In this document: positions 25,014-30,751 of the stretch, piece by piece
Position numbering within the stretch: the first letter of the stretch is position 1
How the letters are laid out: each line of letters opens with the position of its first letter
Source: Magallana gigas
Taxonomy: Eukaryota
Direction: 5' to 3'
DNA length: 64,000 bases
NCBI RefSeq assembly: GCF_963853765.1
Contig: NC_088855.1
Coordinates: forward strand, 29,078,001-29,142,000
Made by a program: the position numbers and the translations under genes
Notes under the pieces: model-generated
What the model was told of the DNA's origin: nothing
The model's database searches: none
What the model saw: only the letters and a program-made list of their open reading frames with translations

Positions 25014-28000
25014 ATGCCGTATGCGAATCAACCAACGGTACAAATTACACAGCTCTCGGAGGAAAACATAAAGTTCGTTCTTGAAGACACGGATTTAAGG
25101 TACTACATCAATCGCTTGAATTGTATAACATTTTAGTAATTTGAAATGTCATTCATTATAGTGAGTTATCCCCCTTTTGATTATGGGGTAATGTAAAAAG
25201 AATTCTTTTTTTTCTCAAGTGTCGCCAATGCAATAAGAAGAGTATGCATAGCAGAGGTACCTACAGTTGGTAAGTAAACGTATATGTGAAATATGTATAT
25301 ACTATGACATTAATTTTGTCTAAGATTCAAAACATGACAAATGTATCAAGGAATTGGTTTGCCCAGAGACATAAATAACGTGTTATTTATGTCTCTGGTT
25401 TGCCCCATACACACTTATATAGCTGGTAAACAATGGTCAATGTATTTGATAGTGTTTCACTTTCAATCAATATTGGTGTTCGGATGATATTGTCGCTGCC
25501 ATGAAAAGCGTTTATATTAAAGGGATGTAGACACGATTTTAGATGACATTTCATTTTGAAATTTTATCAACTTTTATGTATGAAATGGTTTATTTGCGCA
25601 TTTTGAATGACTGACCAAAATTTTAATTCAGGTTACAAGTGAGTTACAGAGTCTTAGGAAAGAAGGTCTGTTATGAAAATGAAGCCCGAGTCTTTTATTT
25701 GTTTAGTAATAATTTAAAGTTTTGAAAAAATAACTTGTATTAAACAAGATAAACTAATTCAATGTGTTCATAAATAATTTTTTCAACAACAAAAAGCAAC
25801 ATTACCTTGATTTACCAAAACAAAGGTATACAATAACAGGACTCAAGCTTTGTTTACAAAACAAAGATTAAAGAATTCCAACCTCTGTAACTTGCCTGTA
25901 AGTTGTTACTCGATATTTGACTTTTAATTTTGACAAAGCATATAAAATATCCATATTGACCATTCTATACATTAAAAATGTAAAAATAAATTTCGAAAAA
26001 ATTTGAGCTCAAATCATGTCAAAGTACCTTTAATGGTTACTGTTGCTTTTTTTTTCTTCAGCAATTGACTGGGTTCAGATCGAGTCAAATTCCACAGTTT
26101 TGTTTGATGAGTTCATTGCACACAGGATAGGCCTTATTCCACTGACCAGTGATGAAGTGGTGGACCGCATGCAATATTCCAGGGTATTTCAATTTGTGGT
26201 TCAAATATTTAGTAGTTGTAGCCAGCTATGAAAGAATCAGTTTGTAACTCTGAATTTTTGTCATTAGTCAATCATATCAAATGAATGAAAATTGCAATAT
26301 ACCGGTACATTTGCACATATTTTAATTAGGACGCTATTAAAATGTTCAATTTCGTTTACCGTTAAAAAAAACCAATAATTATACACTGTAAGAAGTAGCT
26401 ATGAATACCCCGGGTATATATGTTATAATACAGCTATTTCTGTTTTTAAAATTCTTCATCAGTGAATAAATTTTTGAAAAATGTGTGTCATTCACTCCAA
26501 TTACAGCTTTATAAAACCCAGTGAGTATTTTAAAAAGAAATGAATATTTTCACTAGGATTGTACTTGTGAGGAGTTTTGTCCAGAGTGCTCAGTTGAGTT
26601 TACAATGGACGTAAAGTGTACTGAGGATCAAACCAAACATGTGACCAGTGCTGACCTGATTTCATCCAATCCAAAAGTATTGCCAGTAAGTAACGTTTTA
26701 AATCTTTGTTTAGTGATTCAAAAGGAAGTCACTTTAATATACTGTAAACATATTATATTTGGCGCGTACGATATTTGGCGGAAATGAGTGTTTGAACAAG
26801 TTGGCGTTGATTTGAATTAGTGTATTCTTGAATGTGACTTTTCTTATACATATGTGCATGACATTCAGCGATATATTTGATTTAGCGGAAGTCGCATTTT
26901 GCCAAAAGCGCTAATTAAATAGAATACACAGTCAAATGTAGTATGTTTACAGTATAAATCTTTTGATCATTCATCATTGGACCTTTCGTTGACTTGGACC
27001 TATTCTCTGTTTCAAGCTGCTTTCTTTGACCAAAAATAAATATACGAGTAGTTATGATACTGTGGGTTTATCTTACTTTTTTAAAAATCATTGAATTAAT
27101 TTTGATTGTTAATGTTTTCAGTGCCTTACTGAAATATTTCTATAAATGGGTAACCAAAGGAAATTTAAATCTATCAAGTTACAAGCAAAATTCAGCAATT
27201 CTTTGTTTTATAAACAAGGCTAAAGCCATGGTTTTGTTTTCTTTTTATCATTGGAAAAGCAATCAAACTTTTAGTATTTTTGTTAAGATTTATTATCAAA
27301 AGTGATTTTTATGTAGATTTTAACAATACGAATTCAGTATAGCAAAATATTTCTTATTAGGACAGCCTCATGTCAAAACAATAGAAATGAAGATCAGCTG
27401 TTACAGTATTGAAAAGGACTATAATTACTCTTAAATCTTCAAATTTTAAAAGCATTCAATGTTGAATTAGAAAAAAATTGAAATAAAATATGCATAGAAT
27501 ATATTGAAAACAAAGAAACAAATAGGGATATCACACAACAATATAAAATCAAAACATTTTTAAAATTTGAATTACAGTGTTTAAGATAGCAACAAATACT
27601 GGATAAAATAAGAAGAATGATAAAAAGAAATAAATGTTTAAAACGGGGAAATAGAGGAATAAACAGTGTTCAAATTATAATGACTTAGTCCAATGACTCA
27701 ACCATCTATAGGTTAGTAGAGTTATGCTGAATGATGACATCCTCAATTTCCTGCAGACTTAAGCGATTAGCAGAATCACTGACAAGACAGCGGTTAACTA
27801 AATCTGTCAGTGACTGACTGGCAGAGGCTGGAATGGCTGGCAAATTTCCCTGCATGATGTCCATGAATACAGAAAACGGGTTCACTCCACTCCTGTCATA
27901 GAACGCTGGTTCCAGGGCAAGCATTTCATAAAGCAGACAGCCCAAGTTCCAGGAGTGGGCTTTGGAATCTGGATTCTGGCGGCCCAGGACTTCCGGTGCC

Positions 28001-30751
28001 TCGTACACGGGCTTATCTATCTGGGCATCCATGGCCGTTACCATCCCAGATTCCTCATTGTCGGGAGGATTGATCGTGATCCAGCCGTTTGGTAGATATC
28101 TGATATCTGTTGATGGAATACTGGTTACGGGAGAGATTTGCCCAGATAGAAAAACGTGCAGAACTTTGGTTAGGGTTTTCCAGATGAGGCCGTGTTCTAA
28201 CGTCGTTCCGGACTCTTTCGCTTTGTCAATTTTCTCGGCAAGGGATTGGGTGGGAATTAGGACACAGCAAAGGTGGCCGTTTTCTTTGAATGAGGCCACC
28301 ATGGAGGGATCATAGTCAGATAGATGGAAGTTGGAATCTAAAGGCAACATTAAATGAATTTTATGTCATAGTGATACAGTACATTTAATATACTGTAAAA
28401 ATTCGAAGTTTTTCAACAGATTTACTAACACAAAATTAAAAAATTGTTTTTTTCAAAATTAAAATGCATGTCATTTTAGTAAAGATAAACTAACATCTGG
28501 TCTTGCAAATACAGAAACATGTCTGTACATGTATCATGTCAACTGCATATTATTGAGCCTCTACATTGGTTTCAAAATTGCTTATAACAAATGAGCAAAT
28601 ACCGGTACATGTACCAGTACTGTTGATATTATTACTCTGAATAATGTCAGAAATTTTCATTTTTCCATTATTTTTGTTTTTCTTACTTTTTGGGAAGACT
28701 TTGATGATGACATCATCATTGGTCAGGCAACAGGTGGCAGGGTAGCACCTCTTGGTGTGGTTCTCTGGGCTCAGTCTTTCCACATCAATAGCAAAGTCCT
28801 TCATACTTAATGCTCCGACCTTGGTTTTTATGGACGTTGGGAGAGGGAGTTGATGTACCTTTGTAATGATATGAGCATGATTAAACAGGATGAATCTTTA
28901 GAGGAATATTACAATTACAGATAAAGCTATTTTTGTTTGGATTTTTGGGCTTGTGAGGAAGGGGGGCATTCCCTCCTCCACCAAATTTTCAACAATTGGC
29001 CAAGTTGTACAATATATATTACCTTTTCTATGTCTCCCAATGTGACAGCCTGAATGATACTTTTTCTACATAAACCCTGTAAAGATGAAGGCTCAGGAAA
29101 GTCTTCCTTTTCAAAGACGGTCTGTGAGATAGGATCATAGAGTCGGGACATGGCTATCTAACTCATCACTGCCATCATTAGACAAAATATAACCTGGAAA
29201 ATATAGAAAATGGGATTTAGTCACAAAAAAATAATAACTTTTAAAAACCATTTTGTTAGCTTAGAAAGTTTTTTGCCACTCCTAGAATGCAAATACACAG
29301 AATATAATTTTTTCAATAGGAAATGTTTTAATAAATCAGTCTGGTTTGCTAAAAAAAAATTTTATACTGGAATGCCAAATAACTTATTAATGTTTTTCTC
29401 TGACAGGTGACATCCAAAAACAAAGAGGAGACAAGTGAATATGAAGATACTGATGGTAATTATTATGATCATTTTTTATGCTTTTGTTATTTGGCCATCG
29501 CGTGAAGTGACTGTATAGTGTATCTATCTATTTGGTCTAATTCAACTGTCATTGAAAAAAGAATAACCTGTGTTCATCTAAAACCTTTCCAAAGGATGAC
29601 TGTCATAATACCTGTAATTTAAATGACTGTCTGAAAGTTAACTTTAAACTTTATTTAGTAGGTAAGCTTAGTACCATCTTTTGCCTAATTAGATCTGTAA
29701 ATATATCCTCTCTGTCTTGTAGATATTTTGATTGTGAAACTCAGAAAAGGACAAGAGTTAAAAGTTCGAGCTTTTGCTAGGAAGGGTTTCGCAAAAGAGC
29801 ATGCTAAATGGAACCCAACGTGTGGAGTGGCTTTTGAGTACGACCCTGACAATTCATTGCGACACACCCTGTACCCAAAACCAGAAGAATGGTCTGTGTT
29901 TCATTTTTAGTAATGAATGTTGTAAATTATATTTTTATTAGGCTACAGGGCCATAAATCATGGACTTTCGTTTACAGTATCAAATGCTCCATTATACAAT
30001 GTACACATGTGTATTCCTTTTGTAAAAGTAAAACTGAGTCAAAAGTGAGTTTGTCTAAGTTTAATTGCCCCCAGGTCAAACATGGTAAATAATACATGTA
30101 TTTCTCTCAAAGGATAAAATGATATGGATTCATTAATATTTCTGGGACATTAATTTTTGTTGATTTTGCTGTAGAGGGGATCCTCAAAATCCCCTCTATC
30201 AATCCTCAAAACCAAATGTCACTGGCACTCTCAGTGCTATTGATTGTGAATTCATTTTGAAATGATGTTGATATAAAGGACACTCTTGTCCTTCCTGCTT
30301 GCTGTTCTACAGGTGTATGTACTTTTATTCTCAAGCATACAGAATTGTTTTTCTCTATTTATAGGCCCAAAAGTGAATATTCAGAGCTAGAGGAGGATGT
30401 CCGTAAGTACAGAGTGAATGGAAGAAAATTGAAATATGTTTAACTCTTAAAGCAATATGACAAATGCATATTATTGCCTGTAAAGATAAATGATTCTTAA
30501 GCATTAAATATGTATTTAAGAGTTTATGCCTAGAACTTCTATGGAATAAGCTGATAATTTATTCATTTACAGATGAAGCCCCATTTGACGGACTAGGCCA
30601 ACCAAACAAGTACTTCTTCAATGCGGAGTCCTGTGGTTCACTGAAGCCGGAAAACATCATGTTCTCAGCCCTAGCAGTGCTCAAAAAGAAACTCAGTGAC
30701 TTACAGACTCAACTCAGCCATGAGATCCAACAAGACGTGTTGGCTGTTTGA
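25014..30751 (+). CDS. POLR2C: DNA-directed RNA polymerase II subunit RPB3, 273 aa
   Basis: Exons 25014-25099, 25220-25269, 26062-26183, 26557-26685, 29407-29455, 29723-29891, 30365-30402 and 30573-30751 (822 nt, in frame). Motifs '[12 protein letters not shown]', '[13 protein letters not shown]', Zn site '[10 protein letters not shown]' and '[10 protein letters not shown]'. Confidence 0.97.
25521..26029. mobile_element. Kolobok-like non-autonomous DNA transposon in POLR2C intron 2
   Basis: Flanked by TTAA (25517-25520 and 26030-26033). AGG...CCT termini; imperfect 19-bp TIR (14/19) agggatgtagacacgattt. Confidence 0.55.
26740..26954. mobile_element. MITE (TACTGTAAAC TIR family), copy 2
   Basis: Perfect 13-bp TIR TACTGTAAACATA / TATGTTTACAGTA. 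Same family as 21185-21394. Confidence 0.82.
27706..29151 (-). CDS. Nested antisense gene: N-terminal SOCS box plus NEK-like pseudokinase, about 310 aa
   Basis: Exons 29151-29023, 28858-28687 and 28337-27706 (GT-AG, phases 0 and 1, 933 nt open). '[13 protein letters not shown]...[11 protein letters not shown]' matches a SOCS box. Kinase motifs 'VIIK', 'VYEAPE', '[10 protein letters not shown]' and 'NRLSL' are present; there is no HRD or DFG. Confidence 0.85.

Follow-up and report, generated by a model that had tools for sequence, protein, structure and literature searches.

What does an oyster encode on the opposite strand of an intron of its RNA polymerase II (Pol II) subunit gene POLR2C/RPB3, and does the position of that gene matter to what its product does? 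The question is raised by a 64,000-nucleotide stretch of the Magallana gigas genome (contig NC_088855.1, positions 29,078,001 to 29,142,000; hereafter the window, whose own numbering is used throughout), in which a reading made from the letters alone, the sequence-only reading, had proposed an antisense gene that joins an N-terminal SOCS box to a pseudokinase. The evidence shows a functional gene, antisense in POLR2C intron 4, whose product probably serves as a substrate receptor of the Cullin-5 RING ubiquitin ligase (CRL5), with a dead NEK-type kinase domain as its recognition module.

Gene structure, transcripts and selection

The coding sequence occupies 27706-29151 on the minus strand and lies wholly within intron 26686-29406, which spliced reads define for the plus-strand host gene. 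As the sequence-only reading had it, three minus-strand exons join in frame, here to 310 amino acids and a stop codon, and its coordinates, frames and quoted peptides proved exact. Coding exon 1 (29023..29151, 129 nt, residues 1-43) carries the start codon, an N-terminal β-hairpin and the BC-box half of the SOCS box. Intron 1 (28859..29022, 164 nt, phase 0) splits the SOCS box between its BC box and its Cul5 box, and coding exon 2 (28687..28858, 172 nt, residues 44-101) opens with the Cul5 box LPLP and runs on into the kinase N-lobe as far as the VIIKVFPK strand. Beyond intron 2 (28338..28686, 349 nt, phase 1), coding exon 3 (27706..28337, 632 nt, residues 101-310 and the stop codon) encodes the remainder of the pseudokinase domain. 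Both introns are of the GT..AG type, with donors AAG/GTAATA and AAA/GTAAGA and acceptors ACAAAG/ and CTTTAG/, and the window sequence contains no N. The junction peptides of the spliced product are DIEK/VHQLPLP (exons 1 and 2) and VFPK/NSNFHL (exons 2 and 3). A TAG in frame with the ATG at 29151 stands 9 nt upstream of it, and the N-terminus MSRLYDPIS agrees with the MLRLYDPIS start of the Saccostrea proteins.

The genomic open reading frame (ORF) of exon 1 stops after 74 amino acids and that of exon 2 after 84, and because both introns carry stops a contiguous 310-residue ORF can only come from fully spliced RNA. Such an ORF, P0208, is present in public RNA assemblies, on contigs no longer than 1090 nt; it has 3 residue differences from the window model and includes both junction peptides, so that exons 1 and 2 are joined to the kinase exon as had been proposed. 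A second assembled ORF of 310 residues, P0201, has 28 differences from the window model, and P0198, which is RefSeq XP_052714076.1 of Crassostrea angulata, has 8; the RefSeq annotation of this sister species already models the nested gene. These three are 310-residue members of the 90% cluster around the exon-3 ORF, and in the full-length protein analyses P0208 (99% identical) and the orthologues stand in for the exact spliced window protein. The joint between 28337 and 28687, which appears on the plus strand as CT..AC and is thus a minus-strand GT..AG intron, was read in one RNA contig from run X2.

RNA contigs over the nested gene extend across 27439-29332, within the host intron. A contig of run X2 that spans 27439-28186 points to a probable 3' untranslated region (UTR) at 27439..27705 on the minus strand, whose end is provisional; no poly(A) signal or tail was identified. 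At the other end of the gene, minus-strand positions 29152-29200 hold a strong acceptor-like site, a pyrimidine tract followed by CAG, about 45 nt 5' of the start codon, and a short upstream ATG-ATG...TAG reading frame precedes that codon. These features hint at a 5' UTR intron or an upstream ORF, and the 5' end of the nested transcript is likewise provisional.

An orthologue search with exon 3 returned full-length proteins of 302-311 amino acids from Saccostrea, Pinctada and other bivalves, with which the spliced window protein aligns end to end, leaving no gap at either junction. The three-exon structure and the intron positions are the same in Saccostrea, Pinctada, Tegillarca, Dreissena and Patella. 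Between oyster species exon 3 has a ratio of non-synonymous to synonymous substitution rates (dN/dS) of 0.09-0.2, and comparison with a 97.5% identical allele (L001) shows 13 synonymous and 6 non-synonymous codon differences with all four splice sites intact. The nested gene is under purifying selection. Weak coverage in the RNA runs and the retention of introns in some contigs could be taken to mean that the locus is a decaying or non-functional ORF whose motifs arose by chance within an intron, but dN/dS, the exon structure shared by the mollusc orthologues, the full-length spliced ORFs in RNA assemblies and an AlphaFold2 (AF2) model with a predicted local distance difference test score (pLDDT) of 86.5 leave this explanation a negligible probability, and the comparative data refute it.

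The SOCS box and the kinase domain

The 50 residues that surround the exon 1/2 junction match the Pfam SOCS_box profile (PF07525) with 32.8 bits over profile positions 1-35, well above the curated gathering cut-off of 23.5 bits. Exon 1 alone reaches 15 bits (profile 1-23), and it takes the splice to complete the SOCS domain. P0208 scores 27.4 bits and the orthologues 26-33.6 bits, and 23 of the 25 family proteins match the profile. On the minus strand the box (residues 20-54) is encoded by 28826..29094, a span interrupted by intron 1 and supported by Pfam, a PDB profile search and the helices of the AF2 model. The ten-residue BC box fits the pattern (S/T/P/A)-L-x-x-x-(C/S/A)-x-x-x-(aliphatic), and in an alignment of 30 family sequences, from cnidarians to molluscs, its Leu is at least 90% conserved while the Cys position is occupied by C, S or A. 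The core of the Cul5 box, LPLP, satisfies L-P-x-P; only 8 columns of the same alignment are invariant, L47 and P50 of this motif being two of them. A PDB-wide search with an N-terminal profile built from eight family members found only SOCS boxes, with that of ASB7 the best match (3e-5) followed by those of ASB8, SOCS4, SOCS1, ASB9 and SOCS2. In the AF2 model of P0208 (pLDDT 86.5, predicted template-modelling score 0.77) a β-hairpin (residues 2-15) precedes helices at 24-36, 38-46 and 51-58, and the helices of the SOCS region have pLDDT values of 84-90.

The kinase part matches the Pfam Pkinase profile with 47.8 bits (cut-off 31.7) in its C-lobe only (profile 154-257), and a search of a protein atlas returned generic kinase clusters only. 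The closest solved protein by sequence is human NEK7 (5e-11), and the closest folds are those of NEK7 (Z 21.3 over 243 residues) and then NEK2 (Z 20.5). The C-lobe is the most conserved part of the protein, with nine consecutive invariant residues, YEMLALEPA. In the alignment with NEK7, the HRD segment lies opposite a gap and residues that are not acidic, and there is no conservation of the DLG Asp. An alignment of the family with active kinases, for which columns from αC onward were used (the reference N-lobes were misaligned to the SOCS region), shows the catalytic Asp replaced by Ser or Lys, and the DFG Asp deleted in the clade of the nested gene and replaced by Asn in its sister clade. A Gly-rich loop is absent from the kinase part of the nested gene, and in the AF2 model helix αC is missing, about 15 residues with no helix connecting strands 92-97 and 113-119.

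The sequence-only reading had described a kinase fold that keeps its VIIK strand, APE and subdomains IX and XI and lacks the Gly loop, HRD and DFG, fused to an N-terminal SOCS box with a BC box and LPLP. Both halves of that description are borne out, and two features go beyond it, in that helix αC is also lost and the β3 Lys of the VIIK strand is Arg in Saccostrea. The persistence of this Lys in most members, together with conservation of APE, the Trp and Gly of subdomain IX and the Arg of subdomain XI, could be reconciled with an atypical active kinase that uses non-canonical catalytic residues. We consider this highly improbable, as the Gly loop and all of αC are absent along with the catalytic and DFG Asp residues, and several members have Arg, Glu or Gln in place of the strand Lys. 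Sequence and predicted structure mark the nested product as a pseudokinase, and the predicted protein cannot phosphorylate because the Gly loop, αC, the catalytic Asp and the metal-binding Asp have been lost.

An exhaustive profile search gave about 20 clusters, each defined at 50% identity, with matches that extend over the whole length and take in the N-terminal region. The named members are from bivalves (Crassostrea virginica, Ostrea edulis, Dreissena polymorpha), gastropods (Patella caerulea, P. vulgata, Bradybaena similaris, Elysia chlorotica), an annelid (Owenia fusiformis) and cnidarians (Actinia tenebrosa, Rhopilema esculentum); none of the named matches is from a vertebrate or a model ecdysozoan. 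On these matches the SOCS-box pseudokinase family is old and widely distributed, with members in cnidarians, molluscs and annelids. In a maximum-likelihood tree it forms two sister clades whose split has support of 99/99, one without αC, which holds the nested gene, its mollusc orthologues and the Owenia protein, and one with αC that takes in the cnidarians. The architecture and inferred function are the same in both clades, and the nested gene differs from the αC-bearing proteins in the loss of that segment, a length smaller by about 40 residues, its three exons and its place within RPB3. All named members carry automatic names such as 'Nek6-like', or 'nekl-3-like', and these RefSeq names are misleading as to function. 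A full-text literature search, with most subscription journals outside its coverage, brought up no account of SOCS-box kinases or pseudokinases as a family.

A putative role in Elongin-Cullin-5 ubiquitylation

In SOCS-box proteins the BC box is the docking site for Elongin C, while the LPxP motif selects Cullin-5/Rbx2 and another domain brings the substrate. By analogy, the sequence of the oyster protein suggests that it is an Elongin BC-Cullin-5 substrate receptor. Its BC box would dock on Elongin C of the Elongin B/C pair, its LPxP box would select Cullin-5/Rbx2, and the dead kinase domain, derived from NEK6/7, would act as the substrate-recognition module, with the conserved C-lobe (YEMLALEPA and its surroundings) as the likely binding surface. 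Partner proteins bound in this way would be marked for degradation through the CRL5 ubiquitin ligase.

The protein shares with the ASB-type receptors (ASB7, ASB8 and ASB9; also SOCS1, SOCS2 and SOCS4) the BC box, the LPLP Cul5 box, the ASB spacing and three helices, which are predicted here. It differs from them in that its box is N-terminal, preceded only by a 19-residue hairpin, where theirs is C-terminal, and in that its partner domain is a dead kinase fold where theirs is made of ankyrin repeats or an SH2, SPRY or WD40 domain. With NEK6 and NEK7 (human NEK7 structures 8sxn, 2wqm and 6s73) it has about 24% identity and a NEK-like C-lobe in common, from APE through subdomain XI; unlike these kinases it lacks the Gly loop, αC, the catalytic Asp and the DFG/DLG Asp and has a SOCS box added. 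There are precedents for an Elongin BC docking motif that works N-terminally: LRRC41/MUF1, which uses Cul5, and ZYG11/ZER1, which use Cul2, are N-terminal BC-box receptors, although their substrate domains are leucine-rich repeats or armadillo-like and they are unrelated in sequence to the oyster protein.

Several observations weigh against a CRL5 receptor expressed from this locus. The box lies ahead of the kinase fold in all members (residues 20-58 of 310 in the oyster protein), whereas in classical SOCS-box proteins it stands at the C-terminus, after the substrate-binding domain. The distal positions of the Cul5 box are KV, where the consensus has an aromatic residue and then Leu or Ile. 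Pseudokinases, moreover, can work independently of any ligase, as scaffolds or allosteric regulators. On the side of expression, of the two splice junctions that the sequence-only reading had proposed to look for in RNA, that between 28687 and 28337 is present in the single X2 contig described above, and the joint of exons 1 and 2 (29023/28858) was not seen in the four RNA runs mapped to the window. Two low-depth RNA contigs retain intron 1 (28687-29153 and 28791-29332), and low-depth contigs are also unspliced across parts of intron 2. In two stranded poly(A) runs, X20 and X21, of which about 1% of reads were sampled, all reads over 27392-29251, introns included, are oriented like the spliced POLR2C exon reads, and minus-strand mRNA looks low or tissue-restricted in the sampled runs.

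In the same two runs, the depth of host-sense RNA over the nested locus is similar to that of the POLR2C exons, which may have been filtered. The simplest reading of the host-polarity RNA is that it is pre-mRNA, unspliced or intron-retaining POLR2C RNA, and not evidence against the nested gene, since the minus-strand GT..AG joint and the fully spliced ORF contigs exist. On the simplest reading, too, the gaps in coverage would come from polymorphic non-coding flanks that drop under the 95% match threshold. Elsewhere in the host intron, 26740-26955 has high-depth coverage on both strands and many loose ends that continue discordantly at 26739/26740, 26916 and 26955. The pattern resembles that of a repeat or transposon-derived element whose transcripts come from another place.

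In a different account of the protein, the pseudokinase is the functional core, acting in a NEK-type pathway as an allosteric regulator, a decoy or a scaffold, and the SOCS box serves only for the turnover of the protein itself or for anchoring to Elongin B/C, so that no substrates are ubiquitylated. The C-lobe, with its invariant YEMLALEPA, is the most conserved part of the protein; NEK7 itself has a kinase-independent scaffolding role, and NLRP3-NEK7 structures are among the fold matches; and other pseudokinases are known to work in this manner. We nevertheless judge this account unlikely, though credible, as the family-wide invariance of L47 and P50 in the Cul5 box is hard to explain if recruitment of Cullin-5 is irrelevant. 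A receptor that recruits Cullin-5 is the reading we retain.

Nesting in RPB3 and the surrounding genes

The host intron, intron 4 of POLR2C/RPB3 (26686..29406, plus strand), holds the entire nested gene. It is flanked by exon 4 (26556..26685) and the 48-nt exon 5 (29407..29454), both placed by RNA contig joints and conserved coding blocks, and the plus-strand GT..AG joints 26685 to 29407 and 29454 to 29722 were read directly in RNA contigs at depths of 147-384. Translated comparison with three other bivalve loci identifies eight conserved RPB3 coding blocks on the plus strand, four upstream (~25005-25103, ~25203-25274, ~26040-26182 and 26556-26685), which make the host intron intron 4, as had been proposed, and four downstream (29407-29454, 29722-29892, ~30366-30410 and ~30560-30748).

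The arrangement is conserved well beyond oysters of the genus. Exons 4 and 5 of RPB3 enclose the orthologue, which again runs on the opposite strand, in Saccostrea echinata, Pinctada imbricata, Tegillarca granosa, Dreissena polymorpha and Patella caerulea, and in the land snail Bradybaena it overlaps RPB3 antisense. Since bivalves and a limpet share the same RPB3 intron, the arrangement is older than the bivalve-gastropod split. Members from the annelid and from the clade of the cnidarians that were checked lie elsewhere, and the RPB3 location is thus not needed for the protein family: the Owenia fusiformis gene is a single exon, antisense inside a DCN1-like gene (UBA_4 and Cullin_binding domains; L012:6499-12634), and family member P0037 is a single exon among retroelement ORFs. 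The host gene in Owenia encodes a cullin-neddylation factor; this second nesting of the SOCS-pseudokinase family, inside a gene of the cullin pathway, may be coincidence.

Elongin-Cullin-5 ubiquitylates stalled Pol II, and the half-billion-year residence in RPB3 could be functional, whether through co-regulation or transcriptional interference with RPB3 or because Pol II is a target of the ligase; if so, the supply of a Pol II subunit would be linked to the Elongin-Cullin-5 pathway. Bivalves and a limpet have retained the gene in the same host intron, in the land snail it overlaps RPB3 antisense, and host-sense RNA covers the nested locus in the stranded runs. Intron-nested genes, however, are expected to stay put without selection on their position, and neither the annelid member, placed in a DCN1-like gene, nor P0037, placed among retroelements, is in RPB3, so that we regard a functional link as quite improbable. 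The sequence-only reading had called the connection to Pol II intriguing but possibly coincidental, and that caution was justified: the nesting is very old in molluscs, but the annelid and cnidarian-clade members checked lie elsewhere. The RPB3 nesting is best read as an ancient molluscan arrangement left in place, not a requirement of the protein.

Upstream of the host, an RPRD1-like gene with CID and CREPT domains (~22944-24653, minus strand) stands head to head with POLR2C exon 1 (~25005), about 350 bp away, and the same neighbourhood occurs in Saccostrea, Tegillarca and Patella. The RPRD1-like protein belongs to a family that binds the C-terminal domain of Pol II, and the arrangement points to an ancient bidirectional pair, both genes of which are related to Pol II. 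Conserved coding blocks at window positions 49000-49530 match a DUF4505 gene that flanks RPB3 in Saccostrea too, so that synteny around the RPB3 locus reaches further.

Among documented cases of conserved gene nesting, the occupation of the same RPB3 intron in bivalves and gastropods is one of the older. The lack of vertebrate and model-ecdysozoan members among the named matches and the filing of the proteins as 'Nek6-like' may be the reason that the family went unstudied. The classes of SOCS-box proteins are defined by the domain that binds the substrate (SH2, ankyrin, SPRY, WD40 or GTPase), and to these a NEK-derived pseudokinase behind an N-terminal SOCS box would add another. If the proposed function is correct, the family would also provide an example of how a dead kinase fold can be turned to the targeting of proteins for degradation.

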